This document shows, piece by piece, positions 1 to 58,863 of a DNA stretch of 64,000 bases. The notes beneath the pieces are model-generated. The model made no database searches, was not told the DNA's origin, and saw only the letters and a list, made by a program, of their open reading frames with translations. The first letter of the stretch is position 1; each line of letters opens with the position of its first letter. The translations under genes were made by a program, and so were the position numbers. The stretch lies in the IMG/VR virus record IMGVR_UViG_3300027963_000035, positions 124,001-188,000 of that record; one strand, given 5' to 3'.

Positions 1-536
1 AATCCCTCGCCCTCTCCTTTGTGATCGAGGTTATAATCACGGATTTGCTTATCTTTTAAATCATAAAAGAGGGCGTTAATGTTGAGATCTCTGCGTTTTG
101 CATCCAAACCCGGGCTGCTATATGAGACTTTATCGGGTCTTCTTCCATCTCCTTTTTCTGGATCGTAAAACTCGGTCCTGAATGTTGCTATTTCGAATTC
201 TTTTCCATTTATAATGGCGCTTATTACACCAAAACTTTCTCCTTTTGGAAAAACTTTTATTCCATTCTCTACTGCTTCTTTAGAACTCAGTATTTTGATC
301 ACCTGATCCGGTGTTTGATCCGTTGCCAGGTCAACATCTTTCGGATTATACGGAACATGCTTTTGATGAAATATGTGATACAAGTAATCTCTTATTGCGC
401 CACCAACTGCGTATAATTTTGCTCCAAATTTTTTAAATATATCACTTAAAATGTCTACTTCTGATGGCATTGGTATGGAAGCACTCATTGCATGGTACTG
501 TTCTTCCTCTTTTAGTAGCCAATTTTTGAATTTCAT
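1..536 (-). CDS. cca: CCA-adding enzyme / poly(A) polymerase family tRNA nucleotidyltransferase, 3' part beyond window edge
   Basis: Manual translation from ATG at 536: MKFKNWLLKEE...YAVGGAIRD...KDVDLAT...FEIATFRTE...DAKRRDLNINALFYD, the class II nucleotidyltransferase head motifs. Absent from the ORF track because it is truncated. Confidence 0.9.
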   Translation of the reverse strand, partial: MKFKNWLLKEEEQYHAMSASIPMPSEVDILSDIFKKFGAKLYAVGGAIRDYLYHIFHQKHVPYNPKDVDLATDQTPDQVIKILSSKEAVENGIKVFPKGESFGVISAIINGKEFEIATFRTEFYDPEKGDGRRPDKVSYSSPGLDAKRRDLNINALFYDLKDKQIRDYNLDHKGEGEG

Positions 537-687
537 GTTATTTTTGCTCAACATTTGATGGTTTCCAATATATACTATGGAAATAGTAATAAAATTGATC
601 AAAATCACTAAAATCAATTGAATATTAGCTTAAAATATACAAATATAAAAGTAAAATTGCTTTACATAGGCCAAAAAAGGATAAAAA

Positions 688-1317
688 ATGAAAATTTTCA
701 AGAGCTTAGTCTTAATTTTGTTGATTTCTTGTGCAATTTTGTGTTTTTTAAATGAAAATCACACCAAACAGAGCAATATCAAGCAATCTTTTGAGGTAAA
801 TAAGCCCTATCTTAGTGTTTTGAAGGATTTTTCAACAAAAAATTCACTAGAAAAAATAGTTGAGCAAAACAATGCTGTTCTACTGGACAAAAAATGGGAG
901 TATTTAAATCTTGAAGTGGTGAGAATCCGCAAACCAAGACAATGGAACGTTGATGGAAGATTAATTTTTACTATTGAGACCAAGGATAGCGACTTGGGCA
1001 AACAAAAATTAAAGTTTTATCAAGATATTAATCTAAAAAACAACGTTATGATCATAAAAACTAGTCTAGTTTCACCTGGCAAGAACATAATTGTATGTGA
1101 AAGAACTATAAAATTCTTTGAAGAAGACCAAAAAGATAAAACCTTAGTTGAAATCGAGAGTAAACTCTTGGTAAAGAAAATGGTTCCAAAGTTTTTTATT
1201 AAGAATATGGATAAAAAAGTTGATGAAAACAATATGAAAGAAGTCGAGAACTTAAAGAATAATATTTTAGAAGCAACTAAAGGCCAAAATGCCATAATTA
1301 GCATACCAATCAATTGA
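688..1317 (+). CDS. hypothetical protein with N-terminal signal/TM segment
   Basis: 209 aa ORF, hydrophobic N-terminus, AAGGA upstream. Confidence 0.7.
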   Translation: MKIFKSLVLILLISCAILCFLNENHTKQSNIKQSFEVNKPYLSVLKDFSTKNSLEKIVEQNNAVLLDKKWEYLNLEVVRIRKPRQWNVDGRLIFTIETKDSDLGKQKLKFYQDINLKNNVMIIKTSLVSPGKNIIVCERTIKFFEEDQKDKTLVEIESKLLVKKMVPKFFIKNMDKKVDENNMKEVENLKNNILEATKGQNAIISIPIN

Positions 1318-1384
1318 ATATTCTCTAAAATATTACTATATAAGATTAAGCATCTTATACAATCAAAGCAAAATGAGGATAAAA

Positions 1385-2197
1385 ATGTCTTTTTTTCAAA
1401 ATTTATTTAATTCGGAATTCAGGGGAAACTGGACCTTAGACGATAAGAAATATTCACTAACGTTCACATGTCCTGCAAATAAAAATAGCTCTAATTTTCA
1501 ATCAACTTATAATGTTGGTCCATGGGATTTAGACGGTAAAGAAATTTTGACATTAAATTACGCATATGACACCGAATTTAGAAATTACTCAGCTCTTTCA
1601 ATTGATGTGTCGGGAACAAATTCATCGGCTACGACACCAAAAGAAATTTGTGATGCATTGAACTCAAATGTAACATTCTCAAGTATGTTTTATGCCAATG
1701 TGAATGGATCCGCTGTAGTTATTACTGCTAAACAAAACAGAAATACAAGAGAAATAAAGTTATGGATAAGCAATACCGGGGCTGAACAATTGTTGGGCTT
1801 TAATAAAAAGGCTGGGGTTTCTGAATTACCCTCTTATTTTGCAAGACACACAATCGAAAACAGATTTAATTTTCCTGATTCGGCTGGACAACTCGTTCTT
1901 CTTGATGAAAATGATTCGGCAGATCAAGATATCATAGAGAGTGCCGGATTCTCGCCTTCCGATATGAAACAAGACTGGGAATTGATAGCAGGCAGAGCAT
2001 CTGGACTATTTACTTGCCAAAAATTGACTGTGGACGGCAGCGATAGAATAACACAAATAATAGAGTATCCCACCGGTGCTGTTGCCGGTGCCTTCGCCAG
2101 AAAGATAACCTACACATACTCTGGAACCAACGTCAATCCGAATACTGTAACAGAGATTCCATATGTGTTGGCCGATGCCGATTTGGTTACTCCGTAA
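1385..2197 (+). CDS. hypothetical protein, possibly virion-associated
   Basis: Long ORF. Start moved to MSFFQ after GAGGA. Gly/Thr/Asn-rich, beta-strand-like composition. Confidence 0.65.
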   Translation: MSFFQNLFNSEFRGNWTLDDKKYSLTFTCPANKNSSNFQSTYNVGPWDLDGKEILTLNYAYDTEFRNYSALSIDVSGTNSSATTPKEICDALNSNVTFSSMFYANVNGSAVVITAKQNRNTREIKLWISNTGAEQLLGFNKKAGVSELPSYFARHTIENRFNFPDSAGQLVLLDENDSADQDIIESAGFSPSDMKQDWELIAGRASGLFTCQKLTVDGSDRITQIIEYPTGAVAGAFARKITYTYSGTNVNPNTVTEIPYVLADADLVTP

Positions 2198-2233
2198 CGC
2201 CTCCTAAAAATCTTTTCATGGAGGTTTTAAAAT

Positions 2234-3178
2234 ATGTCAAAACAACCAAAATCCATCAGAGCCCTATCAGAATGTAACCATGGTAGCCTTGTATTTGGGG
2301 CCAGTGGTAAGTATATTTCTTATGCCGGTAGTAATGATTGGGCTTTGGGGACAGGGGATTTCTGCATCGAATGGTGGCAATATCAAACACAAGCTTCGCC
2401 CCCAATGTATAGCAGATTATTTCAAGTGGGCGAGTGGAGCACTCATTCAATAGCTGTAAGTATTGAAAGTGGCAATTTTTTACTTTGGGTAAATAACGGG
2501 AGTGCGTATGGTCCAGTAACTTTATCAAATTATTTAAATCAATGGGTCCACTTTGCAGTGGTAAGACAAAGCGGAGTCTCCTCTGTCTATAAAAATGGAA
2601 CTAGAATATTAAATGTCTCAACACCTAACAACGTAACAAATTCAAGTGATCAATTACAAATAGGATACGGTAGCGGAAATTACTGGAATGGTAAAATAAC
2701 CAATTTTAGATGGGTCAAGGGAAACTCGGTATACGACGGAACACAGAGCTCAATAACAGTTCCAACTTCTGAATTACCTGTTGTAACTGGCACCAAACTT
2801 TTATTGCTGACTAATAGTTCTGGGGCTTATCTAGATGATAGTAGCGGACTTGGAAAGATTGCCACTAACAACGGATCGGTTTCTTGGGAAGGTTCAAGTT
2901 TTTTATGTGAAGAGACTATAACAACCACAACCACAACAACCACCACAACTACGGCTTCTCCGTTATCTCAAACCAAAATTATTAGATCTCATGGTCATAA
3001 CAAGCTGACAAAGAACGTGAACCATAGATTTTGGAAAAGACCATTATATAGACTTCCAAAACAAATATTAAATTTAAGATTAAGCACAACACATGTTGGC
3101 AGCCCAGTAACAAGGATTTTGGCCGAGAATAGAGACGTAATCTCCGCCGAAGACGGATCCCCAATAGCAGCTGATTGA
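2234..3178 (+). CDS. LamG/concanavalin A-like lectin domain protein with Thr-rich linker
   Basis: GTGDFCIEWW, NQWVHFAVVR, YKNG, GKITNFR pattern; poly-Thr tract. Confidence 0.8.
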   Translation: MSKQPKSIRALSECNHGSLVFGASGKYISYAGSNDWALGTGDFCIEWWQYQTQASPPMYSRLFQVGEWSTHSIAVSIESGNFLLWVNNGSAYGPVTLSNYLNQWVHFAVVRQSGVSSVYKNGTRILNVSTPNNVTNSSDQLQIGYGSGNYWNGKITNFRWVKGNSVYDGTQSSITVPTSELPVVTGTKLLLLTNSSGAYLDDSSGLGKIATNNGSVSWEGSSFLCEETITTTTTTTTTTTASPLSQTKIIRSHGHNKLTKNVNHRFWKRPLYRLPKQILNLRLSTTHVGSPVTRILAENRDVISAEDGSPIAAD

Positions 3179-3214
3179 ATAGATTGATTGATTGCCGGTG
3201 AGTCACAACTGATT

Positions 3215-3682
3215 CTAAGTAGGTTGGACAGGGATAGCTTCAATTAAAATAGCTCTCCAAAAAATATTTTCAATATTTTCTACTTTACGACCATCTACCA
3301 ATATATTTTCTCCTAAAAATTTTTCTATATTCTTATTAGAAGGTAAAAATTTAGCATCGGTTAAAAAATCATAGTCACTATACTTTATTTTTTTAGTATT
3401 ATAATCTTTAGCTAACTGCTCAGCCTCTGCTCTAGTTTTCCAAGACCCTATTACACGTGAACCTATTGCCCATAAATTGATTTTTTGATTTTGATTATAT
3501 TGTGCAATATATGTTTTAATTTTTATGTATACTTCTTTTGATTTTTCTTCAAAATCCTGAAAATTAAAAACTTCTTTTTTATTCTTTATTACTGGTATTT
3601 TAGATAAATTAAGTTTTTCCATCCAAAAAGGGCCGTAAATATCAAATAATTCTTTTTCGGTATAGTTTTTCCCTATTTCCAT
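3215..3682 (-). CDS. putative minimal nucleotidyltransferase (Pol-beta fold)
   Basis: WAIGSRVIG ... SDYD motif. Confidence 0.55.
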   Translation of the reverse strand: MEIGKNYTEKELFDIYGPFWMEKLNLSKIPVIKNKKEVFNFQDFEEKSKEVYIKIKTYIAQYNQNQKINLWAIGSRVIGSWKTRAEAEQLAKDYNTKKIKYSDYDFLTDAKFLPSNKNIEKFLGENILVDGRKVENIENIFWRAILIEAIPVQPT

Positions 3683-3722
3683 AAATAATCAATACCGTCT
3701 CCGTTCTCTGCTACAGAGAGAC

Positions 3723-6700
3723 TCAAATTCCAGGTTCTTCAGTTGTTGTTGTGGTTGTTGTTCCTGGATATGGCATGGTTATTGTCACCGTTGCCGCCGG
3801 TCCACAATTATATATATCATTATTACATGCCGATACGGTAAAAGTGACTTCTGCCCCAGGTACACAGCAGTTGAAAATAGCATCAGCATCCGCCAGATCA
3901 CTATACGATAATGTTCTACTTGATCCGCCGCCCGGCTGGAGCCCAATTCCCTCGTCCACCAGGCCCCCTCCAAGTACACCTATAGCATATGATGATAATT
4001 CGAAATCTCCTGAATCCAAGGGAGCATCCCAACTAAAATATACGCTACTGCTTTCAAAAGATGGAACTGCGTTGAAGTTTTGTGGGGCGCTTGGTTTAAC
4101 ATAAGAATTGGTTATATCAAGCGAATCTTCTGCAAATTCTCCACATAAATAATATGTATCTTCGGTTGAGCCGTGGCAAGCACTCAATTGAGCGGTAATT
4201 AATCCAGAGATTGGCCCTAAATCATTGGCAGGATTAATATTATATGTGTTGCCCGTAATATCTTCGTCTCCATAAATTAACTCCCCAGAATTATAAATTT
4301 CAAATCTGTATGAGTCTACACTTTGCCCTCCATCTGATGACGGCGGATCCCAAGACAAAGATATTAATCCATCTTCTGGATTTGTTATCGAGAAGTTTGT
4401 TGGGCTTCCAGGTGCTTGTGTCGTGGTTGGCTCCTCTGTTGTTGTAGTTGTGGTGGTGGTTGTAGTTGGGGCTACTGTTGTGGTAGTTGGGGCTACTGTT
4501 GTGGTAGTTGGGGCTACTGTTGTGGTAGTTGGGGCTACTGTTGTGGTAGTTGGGGCTACTGTTGTGGTAGTTGGGGCTACTGTTGTCGAAGATACAACTT
4601 TAGAAGGATATGAATACAATACTTGTGAGCATACCGTTACTGCTGGGATCCACGCTCCTCTTCGGGATGACCCAGATGATAGGGATCCTTTTAACTTTGT
4701 GCCCGGATCTACATATTTCCATGTAGAGCATCCACACGAGTTTAAAGTTGAACCTATTTTCAAATCTTTATTATGTTTTAAACATCTTATATTTGTATCA
4801 CAATTTGTGCTTCCACAAGATTTTGGCTCAACTTCATCGTAGATAACATCTAAGAATTTTTTGGCCACTATGGTAGCATTTTCTGTTGTAAGCTCAGTAT
4901 TATTTCCAAGGCTTACTATTAAATAGTAAATATCCTTCCTATCAGATAAACCCTGTAGACAATGGTCATCAAATTCTGACGTTTCGTCGTATAGTTGAGT
5001 TATTCCATCCGGACTTCCCGGAACTATAATTATATGGCTCAACGAAGGATCATCAAGAGGATTTGATGTGGGCGCATCAAAAGAGCATTTTAGGTAACAT
5101 GAGTAACCCTTCCCCCTAGAACTTACCTCAAACACATCAGCAGATATTGTTCTTTCTCCATTGCCCGCAGCACCAGTTATTGAAAATTCTCCCATGTTTA
5201 TATTTCTTGCAACCAAAACAAATAATCCTGGATACATATTGGTGAAATAACTGCTTCCTTCTCCAAAATAATCTGTTCCACTTTTGACTTCTCCGTCGAA
5301 TACTGTTGGTTTATAACCGTAATAATAAATATTATCAAAATCATAATTAGATTGATAGGCTGCTTGTGTGTGAGTGGAGGGCGTGGCGTAAAAAGTGACC
5401 CCAGGCTCATAGGAATCTTGTCCAAATATTCCTCCCTCTTTTAATTCGCTGTATGGGGGCACAACTTCTTCGTTACCATCGATGACATATAGATGGACGT
5501 CCGTGTTAATGAAATTTCCCCAATCATATAAATCATTTCCCCCATCTTTAATTCCAAGAGTGTTGACTTCTATTGGCAATCCAAAGCTGCCGGGAACACC
5601 TAAATGATTTAATTTTACAATATTTCTTCTGGGTTTAGAGAACAGTCCGGCAGCCCATATGCTATTGTCTCCCAAATATTTTATTTGAGTTACTCCGAAA
5701 TCAAAAGAAGTTGAAGTTGCAAACGAACTATCTAATGTGCCATCTGTGTTTAATCTGCATATATTTCTGCTGGGAATTAATTCCTGGCCGTATAGGAGAT
5801 TATTAAAAAATCCGCCCACTAATATCTTGCCATCGTCTTGGGTGTCTATCGCATATACACCACGAGGCAGCCAGTCAATACCGTCTCCAATTTCAAAACC
5901 GGGCGCAAAATCCATGTCAAATCCTTGGAATCCACCGTTCCCATCAGATTTTAAACGCATTAGATCATAGCGTGAATCGCCGTCTTCTGCATTTAATAAA
6001 TTAAAATATCCTCCGATCAAAACGTCTCCGCTAGATTCTTCGTGAAAACAAAAAATCCCAGGAAAAGGACCATCTGCATTAATAGAAATATCAATTTCAA
6101 CTGCATCGCTTGCGTCCGAGTTCATTAAAATCAAAATTGTCTTTGACAATAATTCTGAGTATGTTGGAACTAGTATTTTCCCGTTACTTAGAACCTTTGC
6201 TATTTCTGTATTATTTTCATTAAATTGATAATTTGAACCTGAGTCATATAAATCCAAAAAGTTACTATTAAAGGTGATATCTAGTTCGCCCGGAACATCT
6301 GCATTTGCATCGCTGAGTATTTTGCAAACAGAGGCAACTGGAGTACTGACAGAATTATTTTCATAATTATTTGTATGCGTATTAAAAGTGTCTGCCCAAC
6401 TATTTACAATTATAGAATCATCCTCTGTTACATTTAATTGATGTATTGAGTAATCAAAAGAAACTGAAAATGTTGGGTCTATAGATCCATCCGTGTTTAA
6501 TCTGACTATATTACGATGCTCAACGTCACCAGATGCAGCGATGAATTCAAAATTGCCTCCTACGAGTATCTTACCATCAGATTGTATCGCTGTTGACAGG
6601 CTTTGTCCCCCGCCACCTCCGCCATTGGATCCTTCTCCAAAGTTGAACCAATCTCCAAATTGCGGAGCTTGAAAAGTTTCATCGACAGTGCCATCTTGGT

Positions 6701-6947
6701 TGATTCTAATAACTCCATACCCATGCTCAAAGAAAAAAGTAGTCCCCCACGCTCCTCTTATATCTTCTCCAAAAACTCCTGCTAAAATTAGTTTGCCATC
6801 AGATTGGACAGATATCGATGAAACATTTGTCGATCCCAAATCACTGACTGCTGGGTCGTCACTGAAATAGAATAAGTTGTCTATACTATTCGTTATTTCG
6901 TGATATTTTGAGTTTAAATTGGATAAATTTTTATTTATACTTGTCAT
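3723..6947 (-). CDS. large delta-60 repeat (DUF5122-like) beta-propeller protein with Thr-rich repeat and two FN3-like domains
   Basis: Repeated (V/I)QSDGKILVGG...RLNxDGsxD units; (VAPTTTT)6; PGSPTNF..LSWDPPSSDGG and PSAPQNF..FSWDAP FN3 patterns. Confidence 0.8.
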   Translation of the reverse strand: MTSINKNLSNLNSKYHEITNSIDNLFYFSDDPAVSDLGSTNVSSISVQSDGKLILAGVFGEDIRGAWGTTFFFEHGYGVIRINQDGTVDETFQAPQFGDWFNFGEGSNGGGGGGQSLSTAIQSDGKILVGGNFEFIAASGDVEHRNIVRLNTDGSIDPTFSVSFDYSIHQLNVTEDDSIIVNSWADTFNTHTNNYENNSVSTPVASVCKILSDANADVPGELDITFNSNFLDLYDSGSNYQFNENNTEIAKVLSNGKILVPTYSELLSKTILILMNSDASDAVEIDISINADGPFPGIFCFHEESSGDVLIGGYFNLLNAEDGDSRYDLMRLKSDGNGGFQGFDMDFAPGFEIGDGIDWLPRGVYAIDTQDDGKILVGGFFNNLLYGQELIPSRNICRLNTDGTLDSSFATSTSFDFGVTQIKYLGDNSIWAAGLFSKPRRNIVKLNHLGVPGSFGLPIEVNTLGIKDGGNDLYDWGNFINTDVHLYVIDGNEEVVPPYSELKEGGIFGQDSYEPGVTFYATPSTHTQAAYQSNYDFDNIYYYGYKPTVFDGEVKSGTDYFGEGSSYFTNMYPGLFVLVARNINMGEFSITGAAGNGERTISADVFEVSSRGKGYSCYLKCSFDAPTSNPLDDPSLSHIIIVPGSPDGITQLYDETSEFDDHCLQGLSDRKDIYYLIVSLGNNTELTTENATIVAKKFLDVIYDEVEPKSCGSTNCDTNIRCLKHNKDLKIGSTLNSCGCSTWKYVDPGTKLKGSLSSGSSRRGAWIPAVTVCSQVLYSYPSKVVSSTTVAPTTTTVAPTTTTVAPTTTTVAPTTTTVAPTTTTVAPTTTTTTTTTTEEPTTTQAPGSPTNFSITNPEDGLISLSWDPPSSDGGQSVDSYRFEIYNSGELIYGDEDITGNTYNINPANDLGPISGLITAQLSACHGSTEDTYYLCGEFAEDSLDITNSYVKPSAPQNFNAVPSFESSSVYFSWDAPLDSGDFELSSYAIGVLGGGLVDEGIGLQPGGGSSRTLSYSDLADADAIFNCCVPGAEVTFTVSACNNDIYNCGPAATVTITMPYPGTTTTTTTEEPGI
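4462..4586. repeat. 21-bp tandem repeat x6 encoding VAPTTTT
   Basis: gtagttggggctactgttgtg units at 4462, 4483, 4504, 4525, 4546, 4567. Confidence 0.95.
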
Positions 6948-6956
6948 ATTTCCTCT

Positions 6957-7499
6957 TTATTTCTTGAATTTGGCGTTTAAAGCTTTTCTCTTATTCAAAA
7001 GCGATGTTTTCTTTCGGCAAAGCCAGAGATTCTCCATTAACTTGCTGCGGGATCTCATTGGACCTATATTCAGTATTTTGTCTATCACTTCTTGTCTAGA
7101 CTCAACTGTTTGATGCCTTATATTAAAACCATTTATTACTGATTCTTGATATGCTCTCTTATTCTCTAAGACAAATATGTCTATTGGCATTTTCTTATAT
7201 GAACCAATATATATTTTGACTTCAGGATGAAGATCAAATTTAACTAATTTTATATGTAAATCTTGATAACTTATCTCGGATGCAAAGTTTCCCTCTTCGT
7301 AGGGTATTCCGCACTTAGACAACAATAATTGATAATCTTGCTTATCTATTTCTAAATCAATATCTTTAAATACACCGAAAAATGAGCCGGCACCAGACAA
7401 ATGTATTCTATCGACCAGACTACCAGCAACCACGCTATTGGGTATAAAATTTATTATTTCTGAGACTATCTCCCAATTTTTAGGTAAAATTAATTTCAT
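6957..7499 (-). CDS. putative nucleotidyltransferase-fold protein
   Basis: VVAGS ... KDIDLEI ... IDIF motif spacing. Confidence 0.5.
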   Translation of the reverse strand: MKLILPKNWEIVSEIINFIPNSVVAGSLVDRIHLSGAGSFFGVFKDIDLEIDKQDYQLLLSKCGIPYEEGNFASEISYQDLHIKLVKFDLHPEVKIYIGSYKKMPIDIFVLENKRAYQESVINGFNIRHQTVESRQEVIDKILNIGPMRSRSKLMENLWLCRKKTSLLNKRKALNAKFKK

Positions 7500-7529
7500 T
7501 TTTTCTCCTGTTATCTACTCAGTTATTTA

Positions 7530-8009
7530 GTGCGCAGTAATAAAAAAATAAATAAAAATTATTGGTCTGTTTCTTTGCCTCATCCATTATCGCCCTCAGA
7601 TGGTGACGTGAAAATATATAGAAGTCATTTGATCCCTGGAAAAATTCTACTTCTCGGCTGCACACATAGACTCATAGAGTTTAGTGATCATCAAATGGAT
7701 ATTGATCCTTGGTATAATTCATCTACTGTAATAGTCGGTAATTGGATTAATAATAAGAAAAAATACAGCAATATTATTGGTGATGGTGTATTAAATTTTA
7801 CAAAAGAACTTTGCGACAATGTTTTAAATATGTGTAGTAAATTTTCTGATGTATTTATAACAAGAAGTTTTAACTATAAGTTGAAACCAATGAAGATAGC
7901 CAATCACTTCCCAAGCGAAAATGATTTTCTTATAAAGCCTAGTGAATATATTAAATTTGACGAATACTCTTTTTATATTTGGAGATTCTGTGAACAAAAC
8001 AATTTATGA
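7530..8009 (+). CDS. hypothetical protein, possible degenerate SAM-methyltransferase fold
   Basis: ILLLGCT ... MDID ... IIGDGVLNF. Confidence 0.45.
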   Translation: MRSNKKINKNYWSVSLPHPLSPSDGDVKIYRSHLIPGKILLLGCTHRLIEFSDHQMDIDPWYNSSTVIVGNWINNKKKYSNIIGDGVLNFTKELCDNVLNMCSKFSDVFITRSFNYKLKPMKIANHFPSENDFLIKPSEYIKFDEYSFYIWRFCEQNNL

Positions 8010-9021
8010 TAATGTGAAAAAATTACTTGATATTTTCGAAGAATCTCAATGGAACCACAAAGTTAATTATGAATATTTAAAAAATTTTAAAGTTATGACC
8101 AGAGAAGATCTAAGAAAAGTGGAGATGAGAAAAGACTTGTCTCGAACAAGAACATCTGGTTCGACCGGCGAGCCTGTTACTATTGCAAAAACTTCATTGG
8201 ATTTTATTTGGTATTTAGCAACCAACATAAGAGAAATTAAATGGAGAAAATGGGATGTGTCAAAGAACATAGCCATTATCAGGCCGGGCTCTAAAACTCT
8301 TGATATGAATTCATGGGGCATACCAAGGAACATAGAAAATACTCAGGGTAAAACTTTTAAAATAGGCTATTCCTCTGTCTCGGAACTACAGAAATGGTTA
8401 GAGGAAAAAAATCCTCATTACTTGCATTGTGCTCCATCCATTGTCGCCCAGTTAGACTTATCAAAAATTTCAAATTTAATCGATTATAAAGGAACAAGTG
8501 AAATGGGAGGGTCCATGTACTCCAGCGAGGAGTGCGGAACAATAAGCATCCAGTGCCCAGACAACCCCTCTGTTCAGCATGTGATGGAGAATCAAATTGT
8601 AGAGGTTGACGAAGATGGTGGAATAATAATAACTACTACCACCAATCCTTACATAAAAAGATATAAGCATGGAGACCATATAGAACTTGGAGAATGCACA
8701 TGCGGCAGAAAACTCCAAACAATCAAAAAAATCCACGGTAGAGTAAGAAATATGTTTGTTCTTCCAAATGGAGACAAAAAATGGCCACTTATAGGAAGCA
8801 GAGACTATTATGAGAAGTTTGGAATTAAAAGGTTTAAGATAATACAAACCACCCTGGGGGATCTTGAAATACAAATAATCTCTGAAAACCTTGGAAACAA
8901 AGAGAGTGAACTCAAAGATTTCATAAAAAGTTGGATTGAATCCCCAATAAATGTGCATGTTAAGTATGTGGACGAATTTCCCAACTATAAATTCGAAGAA
9001 TTTGTATCACTGGTTTCATAA
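7990..9021 (+). CDS. phenylacetate-CoA ligase (PaaK)-like ANL adenylating enzyme
   Basis: TSGSTGEP P-loop, YSSEECG, RYKHGD, C.CGR, HGR. GTG start after GGAG. Confidence 0.85.
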   Translation: MNKTIYDNVKKLLDIFEESQWNHKVNYEYLKNFKVMTREDLRKVEMRKDLSRTRTSGSTGEPVTIAKTSLDFIWYLATNIREIKWRKWDVSKNIAIIRPGSKTLDMNSWGIPRNIENTQGKTFKIGYSSVSELQKWLEEKNPHYLHCAPSIVAQLDLSKISNLIDYKGTSEMGGSMYSSEECGTISIQCPDNPSVQHVMENQIVEVDEDGGIIITTTTNPYIKRYKHGDHIELGECTCGRKLQTIKKIHGRVRNMFVLPNGDKKWPLIGSRDYYEKFGIKRFKIIQTTLGDLEIQIISENLGNKESELKDFIKSWIESPINVHVKYVDEFPNYKFEEFVSLVS

Positions 9022-9029
9022 ATAGTATT

Positions 9030-10313
9030 ATGAGTTTTAAAGTTTGGCTTGAAAGAAGCGAAGTATCCTCACCAGCATTATTTGAAAAAGTTAAACAGTT
9101 AAAAGGACTGTACTCTGGGGTTCATTTTTCAAAAACAGACTTCTTGAGTTTAAATCCAAATCCGAGCCACTTCGACCCAATAGGAGTTTATGTTTTCCCA
9201 AAAGATTATGTCTTGGGTCATGGTTTGTTTAAAAATAATATGTTTGCAAGTTACCCTTATGCGTTTTTAATCGAGCCATCAGAAAGTGCAAGAGTTTTAA
9301 ATCTCGATATGGACAGGATTACCGCCGAGAAGCTTTTAAGTGATATGGGAATAGATAAAAGCCTTTTAGATAGCGATGAGGTTTATCACAAGTCAAACAT
9401 GGATTCTCCTGGTCATCTTTTTTGGGGAGTTCTGGAACGAATAAGAAATCAAAAAGGACTACCCAGAAACTCTTCCTGGAACAGTTTCTTTAAAAAGACT
9501 GGGTATAACGTTTTATATGATCCTGGGTTGGGTGTAATTCATAGCAATGAACCCAATCAAGTTGTTTATTTAGATCCCAAGTCGTATAGAGTTGTAGATT
9601 TAATAACTAATGATGGTAATTATAAAATATTATATTCTATAGCTAAAAACTTTCCTGATTACCAATTATTTAAGAAAAAATCAAGGGGGTGGCAAAGTGA
9701 AGGTAGAACAGAAATAACACTTAGAGATAAAGATAGATATTCAACAATAGAATTATCCAACTCCAAAGAACATCCTAATAATGTTTGGGTTTCAATATAT
9801 GGATATAAAGATGAATTTAAAAAACAATTTGTTATAGAAAATAATGATGACTTAGTTGAAGTTATTGAGGAAATTAAAAGTTTCCTCAAGACAGAAAAAA
9901 ATGAAAGAAAGCCTGTATTATCAAATAATTACAGCAAGATGGAAGCTATATCCAATACTTATGGTCTTAAATACGACAAAGAATATCCTGGGATAATAGA
10001 AAAGAATTATAAAAATAATACAAAGTTCATAATCAATTATTATCCAAGTACTAAAAAAATAGAATTTAAAGTCAAAAAAGGATACGCTCCTGGTTCTTAT
10101 TACACGTTTTTTTATTACGTTGATATGGTGTCTTCTGATCCTAATGACCCAGTAGAAGACATTAAAGATTTGATACAAAAAATTAAAGAAAAGATAAAAG
10201 ATGATATAAAGGTTTTTAGATCATCTTCGAATCCTAGTGCTCAATATCAAGCAGAAGACGCTTTAAAGTTTGTTGAATTTCTCGAGAATAGAGTTTTTAT
10301 TAAAAGAAAATAA
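9030..10313 (+). CDS. hypothetical protein with capsid-targeting-like N-terminus
   Basis: 427 aa, starts MSFKVWLERSE, TAAATA just upstream. Confidence 0.7.
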   Translation: MSFKVWLERSEVSSPALFEKVKQLKGLYSGVHFSKTDFLSLNPNPSHFDPIGVYVFPKDYVLGHGLFKNNMFASYPYAFLIEPSESARVLNLDMDRITAEKLLSDMGIDKSLLDSDEVYHKSNMDSPGHLFWGVLERIRNQKGLPRNSSWNSFFKKTGYNVLYDPGLGVIHSNEPNQVVYLDPKSYRVVDLITNDGNYKILYSIAKNFPDYQLFKKKSRGWQSEGRTEITLRDKDRYSTIELSNSKEHPNNVWVSIYGYKDEFKKQFVIENNDDLVEVIEEIKSFLKTEKNERKPVLSNNYSKMEAISNTYGLKYDKEYPGIIEKNYKNNTKFIINYYPSTKKIEFKVKKGYAPGSYYTFFYYVDMVSSDPNDPVEDIKDLIQKIKEKIKDDIKVFRSSSNPSAQYQAEDALKFVEFLENRVFIKRK

Positions 10314-10316
10314 TTA

Positions 10317-10646
10317 ATGAAAGAAAAATATATCATAAACGAGTTTGATGAGTTTGCAAAAGAAATAAGAGAGATAGTCGCACGCAATATGGGAGCAGAT
10401 GATACCGAGGATATTGATAGTTATATAACTATTAATCAAGTAAAAGGCTTAATAATAGAGCACTCATCGAGCGTAAAGAACAACAAACCAGTAATTGATG
10501 AAGAAGGATTGTTTGATGCATGTGAAGACATACAAGGAATGATAATGGACGCAGGATTATCTAAATTAGCAGCCAAGGGAATAATAGAGTGTTGCTGGAG
10601 TGATGAGGACAACGACTTTGTATTTTGGGTGTCAAAAAATAAATGA
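10317..10646 (+). CDS. hypothetical protein (paralog of 54279..54659)
   Basis: C-termini ECCWSDEDNDFVF vs DCSFDNDTNDFHF. Confidence 0.65.
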   Translation: MKEKYIINEFDEFAKEIREIVARNMGADDTEDIDSYITINQVKGLIIEHSSSVKNNKPVIDEEGLFDACEDIQGMIMDAGLSKLAAKGIIECCWSDEDNDFVFWVSKNK

Positions 10647-11233
10647 TTATTATATCTCTTTTATTCTTAACTCCTTTTTTAATATACATTATACTTTGTT
10701 TTTTTTCTGTATTGTTGCGTTATCCATTTTTTCTAAAGAATGTTAAAGGTAATATAAACCTATTTGTCGTTAAAGATAATATCCATTCAGATTTTGTCTT
10801 TGAATCTAAATATTGGAAAGGATTGTTTGATACCAATAGGAAATATGTAATCATCGGATGGGGAGATCGTAAAATATTTTTAGAAACAAGTTCTTGGGAT
10901 AAATTAAAACCAATTAACTTTATAAAAGCTTTTTTTGGACTTAACCCAAGTATCATTAGAATAGAGTATGTTGATGAATTACCAATAAATAAAAAAATTA
11001 AAAAGTATAAAATAAATAAAAGTCAATTATCAATATTGAGAAACTATGTTTTAGTTTCATTTAAGAGTTTTAAAAAAATTAAAAAACTTAAAACATATTA
11101 TCAAAAAGGAGATTTCTATTCTTCTTCATTAAGGTATAGTTGCATATACACCTGCAATAATTGGGTTAATATTGGTCTCAGAAAAATAGGATTGAGCAAT
11201 AAGGTTTGGTGCCCAATTAGCCTTTGGCTTTAA
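10643..11233 (+). CDS. DUF2459 / TIGR02117-like protein
   Basis: IHSDFV, IGWGDR.IFLET..W, Y....TCNNW motifs. Confidence 0.7.
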   Translation: MIIISLLFLTPFLIYIILCFFSVLLRYPFFLKNVKGNINLFVVKDNIHSDFVFESKYWKGLFDTNRKYVIIGWGDRKIFLETSSWDKLKPINFIKAFFGLNPSIIRIEYVDELPINKKIKKYKINKSQLSILRNYVLVSFKSFKKIKKLKTYYQKGDFYSSSLRYSCIYTCNNWVNIGLRKIGLSNKVWCPISLWL

Positions 11234-11250
11234 TTACTATAATATATTAT

Positions 11251-15917: not shown

Positions 15918-15987
15918 TAATTTCTCCTAAATTATTTTAGTATAAAAATATATACTACACTAGGTCTCTTTTTACTAATATAATATT

Positions 15988-16413
15988 ATGCCCTGGTATA
16001 TCACAGCATTACTTACCGCCGTTTGTTGGGCTCTATCCTACAGTTCCACCGAAGTGGTGCTTAAAAGCATAGACCGAAAAATGTATTTAGCTTTAAGCGG
16101 CACCGCTAATTGTATTTTTTGGATGATCTGGTTATTGACCAGTAAAACTAAAATAGATTGCGACTTTACTCCCAGGTCGATATCTTGGATGATATTGGCC
16201 TTTGTCAGTGCTATAGCAGGTAACTATCTTTGCATAAACGCAATACAAAGTAAAAGCGCTACACACGCAAGTATAATTGAAATCTCTTATCCTTTATTTT
16301 GTATTTTATTTGCGTTTTTAGCAACAGGACAATTTCAATTATCTTTAATTTCAACTATTGGAACTTTACTAGTTGTAATTGGTATGGTAGTTTTTATATT
16401 AGGCTCAAACTGA
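15988..16413 (+). CDS. EamA/DMT-family small membrane transporter
   Basis: About 5 hydrophobic helices; W.I.ALL.AV.W start; IEISYPLF motif. Confidence 0.75.
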   Translation: MPWYITALLTAVCWALSYSSTEVVLKSIDRKMYLALSGTANCIFWMIWLLTSKTKIDCDFTPRSISWMILAFVSAIAGNYLCINAIQSKSATHASIIEISYPLFCILFAFLATGQFQLSLISTIGTLLVVIGMVVFILGSN

Positions 16414-16645
16414 AAGGTTAACTATGAATAAAGTAAAATCATATCCCTTGACAAACGGACCCAGAGTCAAAGAACCAGAAAAGAGAAAATTATAATGATT
16501 GTTTTAGTTATAATTCTATCATTATTTGTTTTGGGCGTTCTATCTTTGATTCTTGATTCTGTTTTCACGCCCAAGGAAACAAAGATTATTCGAAGAGATA
16601 TTCCAAAAAATAATTATTACAATAAATATGAGACAAATATTATTT

Positions 16646-17642: not shown

Positions 17643-17643
17643 A

Positions 17644-18009
17644 CTATCTAACGCCAATGTGGGCAAGTAATTTATCTAGTGTATGAGGTTGCATAACAAC
17701 GACCTCATTCTCACTACTTTGAGTGACTAAATGATTAAAGACTGATATGAATTCATTGTAGTAATTCATAGCCACGCTTTTGTTTGGACTCAGATAAGCT
17801 TTAGCCTCACCATGCTGATTTTTGATTAATAACCCAAAATCAGAACTTCTCTCTCCGTAGCTCGGACTATGTTCAAAATCAATTGGAACTAGACTAACAA
17901 CTGTCGAAGCAATTTGCTGAGTTGCTATGGGATGATTTTTAAAACTAAACCCATCAGCACTTTGATTTTCTTCTAACTTACCGGAGAGCCATTCATTAAA
18001 TGTTTTCAT
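17644..18009 (-). CDS. hypothetical protein with capsid-targeting-like N-terminus
   Basis: MKTFNEWLSGKLEE. Confidence 0.7.
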   Translation of the reverse strand: MKTFNEWLSGKLEENQSADGFSFKNHPIATQQIASTVVSLVPIDFEHSPSYGERSSDFGLLIKNQHGEAKAYLSPNKSVAMNYYNEFISVFNHLVTQSSENEVVVMQPHTLDKLLAHIGVR

Positions 18010-18025
18010 AGTAATTTATATATTA

Positions 18026-18232: not shown

Positions 18233-18358
18233 AAAATACCTCAGGTTAAGAAACCATAATAATAAAAAATAGAGAAAAAGTCAAGAAAAACAAAAACCGA
18301 AAACTTTTGTCTTTCGAATGGAAATTAAAATCTAACTATTTGATTCATATATAAAAAC

Positions 18359-18652
18359 ATGAAAACATTTAATGAATGGCTAGAAATTAAAGAAAATAAT
18401 AATGATGGTTGGGCCGAAGATGAAGCATACGGGGAAGCCATGTATGTATTGGAGCAAATTGAATGGTGCAAAGAAAATGACCCACAAGGATTAGAAGATC
18501 TAAAAAAAGATGTGAAGCAATTAGTTCCAAAGTGGAGAAAAATATTTAATAGTCATACCAATGGTGAACACGACGCAGAAGAAGACTTGAAGCTCTTTGT
18601 TAATAAATACAACAGCATGGTCAAAGACCCAGAATATCAAATAGAAATATAA
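18359..18652 (+). CDS. hypothetical protein with capsid-targeting-like N-terminus
   Basis: MKTFNEWLEIKE; CATATATA upstream. Confidence 0.7.
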   Translation: MKTFNEWLEIKENNNDGWAEDEAYGEAMYVLEQIEWCKENDPQGLEDLKKDVKQLVPKWRKIFNSHTNGEHDAEEDLKLFVNKYNSMVKDPEYQIEI

Positions 18653-18655
18653 AAC

Positions 18656-19222
18656 ATGAAAACATTTAAAGATTACTTAATCGATAATCACCCAGAGATA
18701 ATGGATGAAGGAATCTTAGACTCATTAGGAAAGAATAAACTATTAAGAAATGCATTGGTGGCAGGAAGTATTGCCGGAATGGGTTTGGGAATATCAAATA
18801 AAGCAAGTGCAGCTCCTCCCGTTAAAAAACCCGTAGCTTCCAAACTTACAGATGAAGAACAAGATATTGAAGATGAAAAAGCAGAAATGTTGGATATGGC
18901 TAAAAAAGTTCCCATGAAAACAAGTACGCAAAAAGTAAATGGAAAAGATGTGGTTGTTTCAAGGGGAAAAGCTCAAATAATAGGGGGCAAGGTAGTTGCC
19001 AATCCTTCTCAAATAAATAAAAGTGTCCAAAAAGCAACTAAAGCTCCCACTAATAAGTTTGATCCAACAAAAAGACAACTACCACAATTGCCATCAGGAG
19101 TAAAATCAAGTCCAGACTTTGGAAGAGCAGTGGAATCATTTAATAGTTGGTTAATCAACAATCACCCAGAGATCATGGAAGAAAGAATACGCCGAAAAGG
19201 TCTTTCTTTCGAACGGAAATAA
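18656..19222 (+). CDS. hypothetical protein with capsid-targeting-like N-terminus and hydrophobic segment
   Basis: MKTFKDYLIDNHPEIMDE, motif repeated near the C-terminus (SFNSWLINNHPEIMEE). Confidence 0.7.
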   Translation: MKTFKDYLIDNHPEIMDEGILDSLGKNKLLRNALVAGSIAGMGLGISNKASAAPPVKKPVASKLTDEEQDIEDEKAEMLDMAKKVPMKTSTQKVNGKDVVVSRGKAQIIGGKVVANPSQINKSVQKATKAPTNKFDPTKRQLPQLPSGVKSSPDFGRAVESFNSWLINNHPEIMEERIRRKGLSFERK

Positions 19223-38939: not shown

Positions 38940-39230
38940 TCAAAACTTGACTCCAAGATTAGCTAGTTCTGTCAAATAATTGTCTAATAGTTTCACAATT
39001 TGATCATTATTATAAAATCCGCTCAATGCTTCACTTCCTATTAAAACATCATTCAGAATTGAATTCTTCATTTTTGAAAGATAGTCTTGAACTTTTTTTT
39101 CATCTGGTTTGAAACTGTATCTGTCAAAGTTCTTTGGATGATATTCACCATGAGGTATTTTGTTATGACTAAGGAATCCTGATCTGCTCATCACATCTTC
39201 ACTAATTTTCCATTCTTTATATGTTTTCAT
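38940..39230 (-). CDS. hypothetical protein with capsid-targeting-like N-terminus
   Basis: MKTYKEWKISE after GAGGA. Confidence 0.65.
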   Translation of the reverse strand: MKTYKEWKISEDVMSRSGFLSHNKIPHGEYHPKNFDRYSFKPDEKKVQDYLSKMKNSILNDVLIGSEALSGFYNNDQIVKLLDNYLTELANLGVKF

Positions 39231-42248: not shown

Positions 42249-42525
42249 TCATCTTGAGCGATGGTTCTTTGTTCGCATAAAGAACCTAGACAATAGGTCA
42301 TTTGTCGAGGATATGTTATTTATAGTTAAATTATAGATTTTTTCAATAGGTCTTTGACAAAATTCAAATATTCTGCAATAATAGACTCTATGAAAAACAG
42401 GTTTGATTTTACCAGCGGCTCCTAATCCTGCCATTCCTATTAGTCCAGCCGTTATTAAGTTTTTGCCCCATCCTTCTTCAATAGTTTCTGGATGATTCTC
42501 TTCTAAATTGTTGGAATGTTTTCAT
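42249..42525 (-). pseudogene. frameshifted paralog of 18656..19222
   Basis: MKTFQQ, frameshift, then LEENHPETIEEGWGKNLITAGLIGMAGLG; 3' part overlaps a duplicated promoter. Confidence 0.6.
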
Positions 42526-43040
42526 CTGATTGCAACCCTTACTATAGGACTTTTCTGTAGAGCTTCCTGCATTTTACTTATTTTTTGTTTTATTATTTCG
42601 TTTACTAGTTCTTGTGCAAAGCCAGGAACTATCGTATTATTGTTAACAGCTTGAATTATTGAGTTTATAACTCCCTGTTTTTCTTCTGCGGTTAAACAAG
42701 CTTGAGATTCAGGGGTTGAGCCAGTTCTAGATTCTATTTCAGCTTCAAGATGTCCTGGTCTGAGTGCTTTATTGCCTGCTTTACCACTACGAATATCTTG
42801 TTCTATATTTTGTCTTATTGTTTGTTTTGCTTTATTTAAAGCGTTGCTGTTCTGCATATTTTGAGATACTACATCTTTTCCACCCCAAACAGCTGTTATT
42901 ATAGACTTGGCTAAACCACCATATGGAACGGCGTTTGCCACAATTTCCGTTCCTATTTCCTTGGCGGCAGATTTAACTATATCGCCAACTGGTTTTTGAT
43001 CTAGCATATTATCTTCTAAATATTGTTGAAATGTTTTCAT
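42522..43040 (-). CDS. hypothetical protein with capsid-targeting-like N-terminus
   Basis: MKTFQQYLEDN. Confidence 0.7.
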   Translation of the reverse strand: MKTFQQYLEDNMLDQKPVGDIVKSAAKEIGTEIVANAVPYGGLAKSIITAVWGGKDVVSQNMQNSNALNKAKQTIRQNIEQDIRSGKAGNKALRPGHLEAEIESRTGSTPESQACLTAEEKQGVINSIIQAVNNNTIVPGFAQELVNEIIKQKISKMQEALQKSPIVRVAIR

Positions 43041-43272
43041 AAAAATATATAAGCATGAAAAGTATTTTCTATATTAATATGTGCTAGAACTACATATTAA
43101 AAGTATTAGTCTACTGGGATCAGGAATATCCTGATAAAAGAATAGGTGATAATCTATTTGAAGTCTATGAAAATAAAGCCCTCAGAAAATCAATAGAAGA
43201 ATGCTGTGACTTTGGATTAAATGTCCAGAATTGCTGTGGGGAGATAAACAGAACGTTTTTTTAAATATGAAT

Positions 43273-46584: not shown

Positions 46585-46800
46585 TTACTTTTTTGTGTTG
46601 TCGTGGTTTTTCCACTTCATTTCACCATGATCTACTTCATCATCATCTAATTTCGGCCCCATTTTCTGAATAGCGTCAGCGGCAACTGGGGTGAAATAAC
46701 TTGCGGGGTAATGCGAGCGAATATAACTATCGGGATATGCCCAGTGCATAGTCCCTGCTCTTGTTGTTTTTTCGCTTAATAGCCATTCCTTAAAATTCAT
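46585..46800 (-). CDS. hypothetical protein with capsid-targeting-like N-terminus
   Basis: MNFKEWLLSE; CATATATA upstream. Confidence 0.65.
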   Translation of the reverse strand: MNFKEWLLSEKTTRAGTMHWAYPDSYIRSHYPASYFTPVAADAIQKMGPKLDDDEVDHGEMKWKNHDNTKK

Positions 46801-46827
46801 ACATTATATATGAACCAAACTCTTTTT

Positions 46828-57404: not shown

Positions 57405-57636
57405 TTTATATCCCCTTATAGTGTATAATCAGATCGAAAACTATTATGAAAATAAAACGCAGCATTAGGGATCGGAGTATTATTAGTCCAAAGATGCAAG
57501 AAGCATTTTTTCATAGGCTCTGTCATCTCTGTGTATTCTGTCATATATTCCATTCGGATATAAGACAAGAGATTAGAATAATAATCTTCCAACATATAAG
57601 ACGGAATCTTATCTTCCATGATATATCTCCCTATTA

Positions 57637-57969
57637 TTACTGGTTGATGCCGAGTTTAGCGAGAATAGCAGCCGCCTCAACAGCAGTATCGCTAGAACGG
57701 TTATCAATCTTAGGAAGCGTTGGGACTGTTTCCCTCAACTTATTGACCCTGCTATAGACGGCACTATTGGTGACGCCAAGTTCCTTGGCAACATCAGAAT
57801 AGTCGCCGCCGTTACCAAAAACTGCATTGATGGTATGAATAAACTGATTCAGACTAACCTTGTAATTACGGCCGCTGGTCTTAGCCTTGGGGCTATAGAA
57901 GTTAGATTCAGGCTTAAAATCAACGTCACGACAGCCAGTAGAAAGATTCAGACCATACTGGATTTCCAT
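57637..57969 (-). CDS. small sigma-region-4-like HTH protein (paralog 6)
   Basis: VSLNQFI..GGDYSDVAKELGVTNSAVYSRVNKLR..EAAAILAKLG; motif at 58036. Confidence 0.75.
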   Translation of the reverse strand: MEIQYGLNLSTGCRDVDFKPESNFYSPKAKTSGRNYKVSLNQFIHTINAVFGNGGDYSDVAKELGVTNSAVYSRVNKLRETVPTLPKIDNRSSDTAVEAAAILAKLGINQ

Positions 57970-58035
57970 TTCGATTCCTCCGGTAGAGATTTGTGTTGCG
58001 GCAACCTAAACGATTGCTAATCGCAACACCAGAGA

Positions 58036-58053
58036 ACCGTACCGGAGGGAAAC
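58036..58053 (-). promoter_or_regulatory. outlying promoter motif
   Basis: Minus strand GTTTCCCTCCGGTACGGT. Confidence 0.75.
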
Positions 58054-58371
58054 GGAGTGTCTACATTTCCTTTTCTCTATTTTGTCTCTTCTTTATCTTG
58101 ACTACGTTTCTCTCGCAGTCATTGCAAAAAGTATTCATGCGTCTTTCAATCCCAATATCATCTAATGGGAAGTTTACCACGTGAGTTCGGTCGCAAAAAC
58201 CACAGTGTTTTTTAACTCTGGCTATGCCGTTATTTACTGCCAATAATTTGTGATAAGGGCCTGGCTTTTTATTTTTCATTTACCCTCCCAGTTGATAAAA
58301 AGTTATTATATCAACTAGAAGAGATTTGGCAATAGATGTTTTATATATCTTTTATTTTATAATTCAAGATT

Positions 58372-58863
58372 CTAGGAACTCTTTTTTCCTTTTCTAATAT
58401 CATCTACTGTTAATCCTGGTTGAAATTTACCAATCATTCTTTCAACAACTTCTCTTGGAAGAGCTTTGTTTATATTTTTTCTACTTTCTTGACGTTTCAT
58501 TAATTCATCAATATCCGGAATTGGAAGTTCTTCTATTCTAACCGAATAACCGTACTTATCGGCAAGCCTGACATACTCTGAACCTTCCCATGCTTGAGTC
58601 ATAGTATTATCAACAACTATTGGAGATAAACCATTCTTCATGGCCTCTTCAGTTCTTTCTTGATTTAGTTTATGATAATGACCTATTTTAGTCACATCAA
58701 AATTATATTTTCCATCCTGCATAAAGAAATCATCGGTGGAAAATATCTTGCCATTTCCAACTAATTTTTTAGCAACCGTACTTTTTCCGGAACCTGATAT
58801 TCCCCTCATAAGTATTAGTTGTTTATTTTCTTTATTTTCTAGCCAATTTGTGAATTTTTTCAT
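58372..58863 (-). CDS. P-loop kinase (AAA_33 / N4BP2-like, polynucleotide kinase family) with capsid-targeting-like N-terminus
   Basis: MKKFTNWLENKE; MRGISGSGKST, STDDFF, VVDNT. Confidence 0.85.
   Translation of the reverse strand: MKKFTNWLENKENKQLILMRGISGSGKSTVAKKLVGNGKIFSTDDFFMQDGKYNFDVTKIGHYHKLNQERTEEAMKNGLSPIVVDNTMTQAWEGSEYVRLADKYGYSVRIEELPIPDIDELMKRQESRKNINKALPREVVERMIGKFQPGLTVDDIRKGKKSS

Follow-up and report, generated by a model that had tools for sequence, protein, structure and literature searches.

In phage T4, IPI, IPII and IPIII (which are internal proteins) and the Alt protein carry a short capsid targeting sequence (CTS), MKTYQEFIAE (Mullaney and Black 1996; reviewed in PMC9026906 and PMC3012670). 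Suppressor mutagenesis assigned targeting to residues 4 and 7 and processing to residues 8 and 10 of this peptide, with Asp at position 10 stopping cleavage but not targeting; the internal proteins are described as basic, and Alt is processed at both ends (PMC9026906). The T4 CTS and the CTS-like leaders of close T-even relatives are already established. Here, we describe a peptide of similar design at the N-termini of genes in a stretch of 64,000 nucleotides ("the window") that comprises bases 124001-188000 of contig C1 (IMG/VR record IMGVR_UViG_3300027963_000035; 251,265 bp, 35.7% GC), listed in its record as linear and approximately 50% complete. Judging from sequence and from the analogy to T4, we consider it probable that this peptide is a T4-type capsid (prohead-core) targeting sequence that is used very widely by a freshwater lineage of huge phages. 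Coordinates with the prefix C1 are those of the contig and all others those of the window.

Other phages are known or predicted to deliver proteins by different means. In the phiKZ-like giant phage SPN3US, ejection proteins are loaded via N-terminal propeptides, mostly of more than 100 residues, that have no short common motif (PMC5694885). SPN3US is comparable in having a giant head with many proteins and in the removal of the propeptides after Glu by a T4-related prohead protease, but its propeptides are long and dissimilar, whereas the tag described here is short and common to its carriers, as in T4. For polyvalent proteins and for effectors fused to MuF or a portal, injection is predicted from their fusion to structural domains or to each other (PMC5512222, PMC9503650). 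These systems likewise deliver enzymatic effectors with the DNA (ADP-ribosyltransferases (ART), SNF2 helicases, kinases and RNA-repair domains), and the N-terminal domain of one tagged protein of the window, 427 aa in length, recurs in proteins of 1000-4100 aa; here, however, the effectors are encoded by separate genes, and each has a short address tag to itself. The Dar anti-restriction proteins of phage P1 and the cargo-loading peptides of encapsulins are further cases of sorting into an HK97-fold shell by dedicated signals or partners, and P1 packs a large helicase-methyltransferase as anti-restriction cargo, but these signals and partners differ and have no sequence relation to the motif studied here. 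In the literature, we found no earlier account of a short T4-type tag in a distant lineage of huge phages, of its spread to about one gene in ten, or of CCA-adding enzymes that bear it, and none for LR756511, the closest relative of our contig; the "moraphages" paper, on an aquatic lineage with a T4 core, does not mention N-terminal motifs.

Frequency of the peptide and selection on its sequence

With a simple home-made gene caller we obtained 291 genes over the whole contig and searched them with the strict pattern ^M.{1,3}[FY].[EDNQKTLV][WYF][LIVMFKR]. This pattern matches 28 of 280 called ATG starts (10%) versus 4 of 1064 internal in-frame Met codons (0.4%) and 25 of 3539 other ATGs (0.7%), an enrichment of about 25-fold at true N-termini over internal and off-frame ATGs. 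Once the start of the cca gene is corrected and three residues are permitted before the aromatic, the motif is found on 34 of the 291 genes, so that the "at least nine" carriers counted in the initial annotation turned out to be an undercount and the motif is not confined to the window. The consensus of these 34 carriers is M-K-x-[FY]-x-[ED]-[WYF]-[LI]-x(0-3)-E, with V also seen at residue 8. In the sister genome LR756511.1, 41 of 887 genes carry the motif, and strong matches per 100 kb number 11.1 for our contig, 4.4 for LR756511.1, 1.8 for T4 and 0.5 for XacN1, a jumbo phage of the T4-like kind; the tag thus resembles that of T4 but has undergone a several-fold expansion in this lineage. In public gene calls, homologues from three carrier families have identical N-termini, which shows that the starts are no artefact of our gene caller.

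Selection acts on the peptide and not on the DNA, because synonymous codons within the tag occur at genome frequencies: the conserved Phe is encoded by TTT and TTC in 22 and 10 cases (genome 69:31), the conserved Glu by GAA and GAG in 13 and 5 cases (genome 76:24), the Tyr codons follow genome-wide frequencies as well, and Leu is spread over five codons from both families. The tag is found behind both Shine-Dalgarno and TATA-type upstream regions, and tagged proteins are not enriched in transmembrane segments (2 of 34 vs 24 of 257 others). As the initial annotation had stated for its nine, the carriers are otherwise unrelated: in an all-against-all BLASTP with the first 15 residues removed, only two PolyA_pol enzymes pair. 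Three proteins have tag-like motifs close to the C-terminus, and two of the three are N-terminally tagged as well; this is reminiscent of T4 Alt with its processing at both ends. One copy (SFNSWLINNHPEIMEE, window 19136-19183, plus strand) covers residues 161-176 of a 188-aa protein, and the others lie at residue 955 of 971 (C1:101370-104285) and residue 110 of 123 (C1:229476-229847); internal matches of the motif number 6 in all, versus 1.9 +/- 1.4 in shuffled proteins.

Tagged open reading frames of the window

All nine N-termini picked out by the initial annotation are present where it placed them. At the left edge of the window, the minus-strand cca gene (1..536; tag MKFKNWLLKEEE, window 501-536) is the 5' part of a class-II tRNA nucleotidyltransferase gene (CCA-adding or poly(A) polymerase family) whose full length is C1:123304-124536, encoding 410 aa with matches to PF01743 and, at full length, also PF12627. 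At the other end of the series stands a 163-aa P-loop kinase of the polynucleotide-kinase type (58372..58863, minus strand) with the N-terminus MKKFTNWLENKE, whose tag MKKFTNWLENKEN makes up residues 1-13 directly before strand beta-1. Between them, a 427-aa protein that starts MSFKVWLERSE (9030..10313, plus strand) has an ATAAATA box 5 nt before its ATG and no Pfam match. It is followed by a 121-aa protein (MKTFNEWLSGKLEE; 17644..18009, minus strand) with a TATATAAAT box 4-7 nt before the ATG, without Pfam or PHROG match and 99% identical in a related 323-kb contig, and by a 97-aa protein (MKTFNEWLEIKE; 18359..18652, plus strand) with a CATATATAAAA box 2-6 nt before the ATG and no family match. 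The adjacent 188-aa protein (MKTFKDYLIDNHPEIMDE; 18656..19222, plus strand) has the N-terminus MKTFKDYLIDNHPE; its orthologue in the 323-kb contig reads MKTFNEWLIEKHPEIIDE, with changes that stay within the motif (Y to W, D to E), and the two tags (MKTFKDYLIDNHPE vs MKTFNEWLIEKHPE) differ at five positions, all in motif-allowed ways. The remaining three are minus-strand genes for proteins that match no family: 96 aa starting MKTYKEWKISE (38940..39230), with a Shine-Dalgarno site instead of a TATA box, 172 aa starting MKTFQQYLED (42522..43040), with a TATATAT box 4 nt before the ATG, and 71 aa starting MNFKEWLLSE (46585..46800), with a CATATATAA box 3-5 nt before the ATG. Several of these genes had been described as preceded by ATATATA or TAAATA, and six of the nine indeed have a TATATA/ATAAATA-type box that ends 1-7 nt before the ATG; as to the other three, the box of cca lies 31 nt upstream, the gene starting at 39230 has its Shine-Dalgarno site, and the kinase gene has no matching box.

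The peptide as a detachable module

The two enzymes among these carriers allow the tag to be compared with the fold that it precedes. The cca open reading frame has a further in-frame ATG six codons upstream of 536, but 536 is the likelier start since most of the 120 closest homologues begin at a Met directly before [NK]FK. The identity proposed in the initial annotation is borne out by the PolyA_pol head domain (PF01743, E 1.6e-22), by alignment of AVGGAIRD and PKDVDLAT to human TRNT1 (GGxxRD and DxD motifs present), and by best solved matches to CCA enzymes at E 1e-23, with poly(A) polymerases matching too; by these motifs and alignments, the product is a class II tRNA nucleotidyltransferase of the CCA-adding or poly(A) type. 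We detected 3440 homologues. Most of the 120 closest (45-91% identity, many on contigs of 100-600 kb) keep an N-terminal F-[KR]-x-[WF]-[LF]-E-x-x-(E)-E, whereas the cellular homologs lack the leader: the alignment of solved cellular CCA enzymes and poly(A) polymerases to the phage protein begins only at residue 28-34 of the latter, and the tag plus a short linker is therefore an N-terminal extension.

The kinase, likewise recognised in the initial annotation, matches AAA_33 (E 1.3e-17) and PHROG 505 "polynucleotide kinase" (E 7e-16). In its AlphaFold2 model (pLDDT 92), residues 1-10 reach a pLDDT of 53 and contain a detached short helix at residues 4-9, with beta-1 beginning at residue 15. The best solved match of the model is T4 Pnk (2ia5, TM 0.67, E 1e-7), with Clostridium thermocellum Pnk and mammalian PNKP as other top matches, and by both sequence and model the protein is a P-loop kinase fold of the Pnk clade. 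Its homologues exist in both states, either tagged with the P-loop at about residue 19-22 or bare (MKLILMRG...) with the P-loop at residue 8-10, and the tag boundary in this family falls exactly before the first strand. The 427-aa protein model is similar, with residues 1-10 at a pLDDT of 47 beside a core above 90. In the sister phage LR756511.1, the CCA orthologue is tagged (MRTTFLEFMGLKE) and the homologues of the kinase (MSQILVIMQGPSGGGKST) and of a DUF5662 protein are untagged, and homologues in genomes of 42% GC keep the peptide. As far as alignments and predicted structures tell, the tag is a separable extension outside the fold of its cargo. Other kinase homologues have a different conserved N-terminal peptide, MNWYKKAQ, which may be the tag of another lineage; these homologues, together with others that have a motif SFKNWLES at an internal position, are P0169, P0179, P0186, P0192, P0199 and P0203, and also P0153-P0157, P0163, P0164 and P0167.

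Likeness to the T4 capsid targeting sequence and head genes of the contig

Like the T4 CTS, the peptide is a tag of about ten residues on unrelated, mostly basic proteins. Position 4 is F/Y, position 7 is W/Y/F and position 8 is L/I/V, matching the functional positions of the T4 sequence, and a Glu follows nearby: 30 of the 34 carriers have one at positions 8-14, compared with 105 of 257 other genes (p 1.6e-7). When a position matrix made from the 34 carriers only was run on all 1326 T4 open reading frames of at least 50 aa that start with ATG, gp61.1 took first place, IPIII the third and IPII the seventh. As a positive control, ipII and ipIII of T4 are both picked up with the gene caller and pattern that were used on the contig. 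The top-ranking T4 gene 61.1 (NC_000866 18966-19130, minus strand) encodes a 54-aa hypothetical protein that starts MKTFKEFIKED.

The contig also holds known and putative head genes of the kind that such a tag would call for, four of which are consecutive on the minus strand. A gp23-family major capsid protein (C1:38750-40174) is recognised by PF07068 (E 1.9e-90) and by alignment to the solved T4 gp23 (E 1e-33), and the S77 (T4-type) prohead serine protease (C1:41113-41802) by PF03420 (E 2e-28). Between them lies the gene of a 298-aa Glu/Lys-rich protein (C1:40220-41116), a putative scaffold by position and composition only, and beyond the protease gene a 595-aa open frame (C1:41821-43608), a putative portal by position alone that has no Pfam match. 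The 298-aa protein has 18 [LIVM]-x-Glu sites, as expected of a gp22-like scaffold that is cut up in maturation, and on these sequence features it likely is one. The mature N-terminus of T4 gp23 maps near residue 34 of the capsid protein, between the candidate sites LLE-25 and LLE-41. In having a gp21-type protease, a gp23-type capsid protein and a putative scaffold in one genome, this phage resembles T4.

The capsid protein shares 75% identity with that of LR756511.1 (a 595-kb "uncultured phage", unannotated) but only 30-36% with its counterparts in XacN1, T4-like cyanophages and other isolates. With a gp23-family capsid protein, a T4-type protease and so low a capsid identity to isolates, the contig represents about one half of the genome of a huge phage from freshwater that has a head of the T4 type and is very distant from T4; several metagenomes from freshwater and lakes contain near-identical sequence. 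A phage collection gave no match to window 1-20000 by megablast or to a 1074-aa protein of the window by tblastn, and relatives were found only via the capsid protein. We saw no RNA runs among the sequencing runs that hold this sequence.

Upstream boxes, gene location and charge

Tagged genes stand out in their surroundings as well. A TATATA/TATAAAT-type box within 30 nt upstream is found for 14 of the 34 tagged genes versus 24 of the 257 others (odds ratio 6.8, p 9e-6). The box resembles the T4 late promoter, TATAAATA, and by this analogy we assume it to be a late promoter; it is frequent where the structural genes lie, in one half of the contig, and rare in the other, which consists of small minus-strand genes. 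In the 25-50 kb bin of the contig that contains the head genes, 11 of 31 genes are tagged, and tagged proteins are basic in their mature parts (median pI 8.8 vs 6.1, p 9e-5). Box enrichment, clustering at head genes and basic charge are as expected of prohead-core cargo, and none of them was picked to suit that hypothesis.

In 11 tagged genes, the TATATA box ends 4-7 nt before the ATG and there is no Shine-Dalgarno site, which would make their mRNAs leaderless or nearly so if the boxes are T4-type late promoters; another 11 tagged genes have ordinary Shine-Dalgarno sites. Boxes 1-7 nt before an ATG lie at window 9017-9024, 18014-18023, 18346-18356, 18648-18654, 43045-43051 and 46804-46812 and at many genes in C1:25-125 kb, and in other structural genes the box lies further off, about 20-25 nt upstream, with a Shine-Dalgarno site after it.

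Proposed cargo and the 427-aa protein

Besides the CCA enzyme, the kinase and the 427-aa protein, the tag is carried by another PolyA_pol enzyme (401 aa), by an SNF2 helicase of 971 aa and by DUF5662 and DUF5872 proteins. About 25 carriers are small proteins, many of 70-240 aa, that match no known family, and many of these are encoded beside head genes. As in T4, the cargo appears to evolve fast, with many carriers lacking recognisable relatives; it differs from that of T4 in including housekeeping-type RNA enzymes and the 971-aa helicase.

The 427-aa protein belongs to a family with at least 911 representative homologues, many of which have a similar N-terminus. Its AlphaFold2 model has a pLDDT of 91, with residues 1-6 below 50. 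A language-model atlas gave ART-PolyVal/AcrIF11 families as a lead (score 0.85), and VIA-align of the model gave Z 7.2 for a pre-ejectosome chain of cyanophage A4, 5.1 for MbcT and 4.9 for the anti-CRISPR protein chain 6kyf_A; Foldseek against the PDB found nothing at E <= 0.001. From these weak leads, the fold of the N-terminal domain, which spans about residues 15-195, may be ADP-ribosyltransferase-like; this, if true, would parallel T4 Alt, a packaged ADP-ribosyltransferase (PMC5512222). By analogy, these cargo types (the ART-like domain of polyvalent proteins and the helicase) fit proteins that are known or predicted to be injected.

One further protein near the head genes is an RNase T-family exonuclease of 519 aa (C1:36070-37629, plus strand) whose gene adjoins the capsid gene. 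It starts MKNYQEAIVD, near the T4 sequence and under the score threshold, and has an internal Met at residue 149 followed by the tag-like MDFKKFISNQESEE, which may reflect an internal start or a fusion.

Interpretation of the peptide

If the peptide is a T4-type targeting sequence, its first 10-14 residues would form an amphipathic helix, with aromatic and aliphatic residues at i, i+3 and i+4, that docks the protein on the scaffolding core of the assembling prohead. The gp23-type shell would then close around this core, the S77 (gp21-type) protease would remove the tag after the nearby Glu, and the mature, mostly basic cargo would remain in the head with the DNA and enter the next host with it. 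Core binding, cleavage, packaging and injection are inferred here from sequence; motif likeness, the T4-type head module, the N-terminal position, the modularity of the tag among homologues, the late-type boxes and the basic cargo support well, though indirectly, the T4-like capsid-targeting leader that the initial annotation saw, and packaging itself is probable only. On this basis, many proteins of varied kinds are probably injected together with the phage DNA. The fuller statement, that the lineage loads about one tenth of its gene products, including CCA enzymes, a Pnk-like kinase, a SNF2 helicase and an ART-like effector, via a ten-residue T4-type tag, is one to which we give slightly less than an even chance.

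Several observations weigh against targeting to the prohead core. The commonest spacing of the first Glu is +2 after the second aromatic (W-L-E), against +3 in T4, W is favoured over F at position 7, and a canonical [LIVM]-x-Glu at positions 8-14 is present in only 16 of the 34 tags. The scale differs too: 34 genes in half a genome, or 12% of genes, stand against 3 CTS-like genes among 244 in T4 with the same pipeline, and XacN1 has 3 unique motif hits among 450 genes, far below the density here. The C-terminal copies of the motif mean that strict N-terminality is not absolute, and in some kinase homologues the motif (SFKNWLES) lies internally, behind some 75 additional residues and without a Met in front. 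A CCA enzyme is expected to act throughout infection. Moreover, this phage, known here from sequence alone, is so distantly related to T4 (a capsid protein about 30% identical to those of T4-like cyanophages, with the link to gp23 made by profile or hidden Markov model) that homology of the tag over convergence is not established. A complex prediction for two copies of the putative scaffold with the 97-aa tagged protein scored 0.01 and counts neither way.

Some of these points would suit an address or docking helix for another phage-specific partner or compartment, such as a chaperone, a membrane or a replication/translation factory, whose likeness to T4 is convergent. The peptide would be just as amphipathic, the CCA transferases and the kinase are cargo useful in the cytoplasm, and the variable Glu spacing, the shortage of canonical sites and the internal and C-terminal copies would be no surprise. 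We nevertheless find this, the main rival reading, unlikely, as the residues that match are precisely those at the four positions to which T4 mutagenesis assigned a function, the genome has a T4-type protease, a putative scaffold and a capsid protein, the tagged genes lie by head genes and behind late-type boxes with basic products, and the Glu enrichment just past the helix has no role in a pure docking model.

Much less probable is a tag for timed degradation or processing that a cytoplasmic host or phage protease would read to limit the lifetime of late proteins. Such a tag could equally be short, N-terminal, followed by Glu and placed on diverse proteins, but M-K-x-F is not an N-end-rule residue, we found no ClpP on the contig (half a genome), and the retention of the tag on enzymes, over more than 100 divergent homologues, speaks for a positive function. 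The sole protease that we identified is of the prohead S77 type, which in T4 is active inside proheads (PMC9026906).

The boxes could in principle also mark conservation at the level of nucleic acid, that is, a promoter-plus-start cassette for leaderless late mRNAs or favourable first codons that spread by recombination. The 11 tagged genes with a box 4-7 nt before the ATG and no Shine-Dalgarno site point that way, as does codon 2, which is AAA in 19 of 19 Lys cases. Against this stand the genome-frequency synonymous sites, Leu from both codon families, the invariant TGG (Trp) that AT-richness leaves unexplained, the 11 tagged genes with ordinary Shine-Dalgarno sites and the retention of the peptide in homologues from 42% GC genomes, which together make such a cassette highly improbable. 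Chance, a gene-calling artefact or a single paralogous family has a negligible probability, for although the starts were picked by a home-made gene caller, enrichment is about 25-fold, public gene calls match in three families and there is one paralogue pair only. A DNA cassette, paralogy and chance were rejected by codon use, BLASTP (one pair) and enrichment over non-start ATGs.

A possible role in tRNA repair

The initial annotation had further suggested that tRNA-repair enzymes are injected with the DNA and pre-empt tRNA-cleaving defences. Its starting point, tags on both a CCA-type enzyme and a Pnk-like kinase, holds, but the repair purpose finds little else in its favour and the tRNA-defence interpretation is speculative. 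The kinase consists of a kinase domain only (163 aa) and lacks a 3'-phosphatase domain, and Rnl2-type and RtcB RNA ligases (PF09414, PF01139) have no match on the contig of a genome that is about 50% complete; the Rnl1-type ligase profile PF09511 has no match on the contig either, but the control for this profile also matched nowhere, so that this search shows no absence. That the tag is not kept in the kinase homologue of the sister phage weakens the repair reading as well.

Among five typed tRNA genes of the phage, at least four have no encoded 3' CCA, namely Thr(UGU), Leu(UAA), Glu(UUC) and Lys(UUU), and tRNA-Tyr may encode it; the genes lie at window 20566-20638 (Thr), 31187-31267, 32023-32095 and 37382-37455, all on the minus strand, and at C1:212602-212683. 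Maturation of the phage's own tRNAs is therefore an ordinary and sufficient role for the nucleotidyltransferases. If the tag works as we propose, injection of the CCA enzyme is implied, and the conservation of the tag across that family is striking; it may serve to mend host tRNAs, to give phage tRNAs an early advantage, or some other purpose. A group I catalytic intron (window 20338-20530, minus strand; Rfam RF00028, 68.6 bits, E 2.6e-15) lies just 3' of the gene for tRNA-Thr.

Other features of the contig

Two very large proteins of 1074 and 1164 aa are encoded on the minus strand at window 3723-6947 and 12423-15917. In both, DUF5122 beta-propeller units are repeated and accompanied by fn3 or F5/8 type C domains; glycosyltransferase and methyltransferase genes are found nearby, and the two are likely surface or fibre proteins. 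Window 24001-28000 is GC-rich (46% vs about 35% elsewhere), has only short minus-strand open reading frames and no Rfam match, and may be a foreign insert or a distinct gene set. Both ends of the contig (C1:1-100 and C1:251166-251265) consist of short tandem repeats, e.g., CCCAAGGTTTACAAGGAA repeated, which are the probable cause of the assembly break.

Implications

Injected proteins are usually found only by virion proteomics of cultured phages, and they form a class rich in anti-defence and take-over functions. If our reading is true, the tag would make it possible to list, from sequence only, which proteins accompany the DNA of huge uncultivated phages into the host. The protein-packaging tools already based on the T4 tag could also be widened by a second, divergent CTS. 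The tagged and untagged homologous kinases are a natural experiment on recruitment into the injected set, and gain or loss of the tag would be an evolutionary switch from a cytoplasmic to an injected enzyme. The T4 internal-protein system would then be an old and portable sorting mechanism and not a curiosity of the T-even phages, one that a single lineage has enlarged about ten-fold and extended onto RNA-processing enzymes, a helicase and dozens of small candidate inhibitors of host defences.

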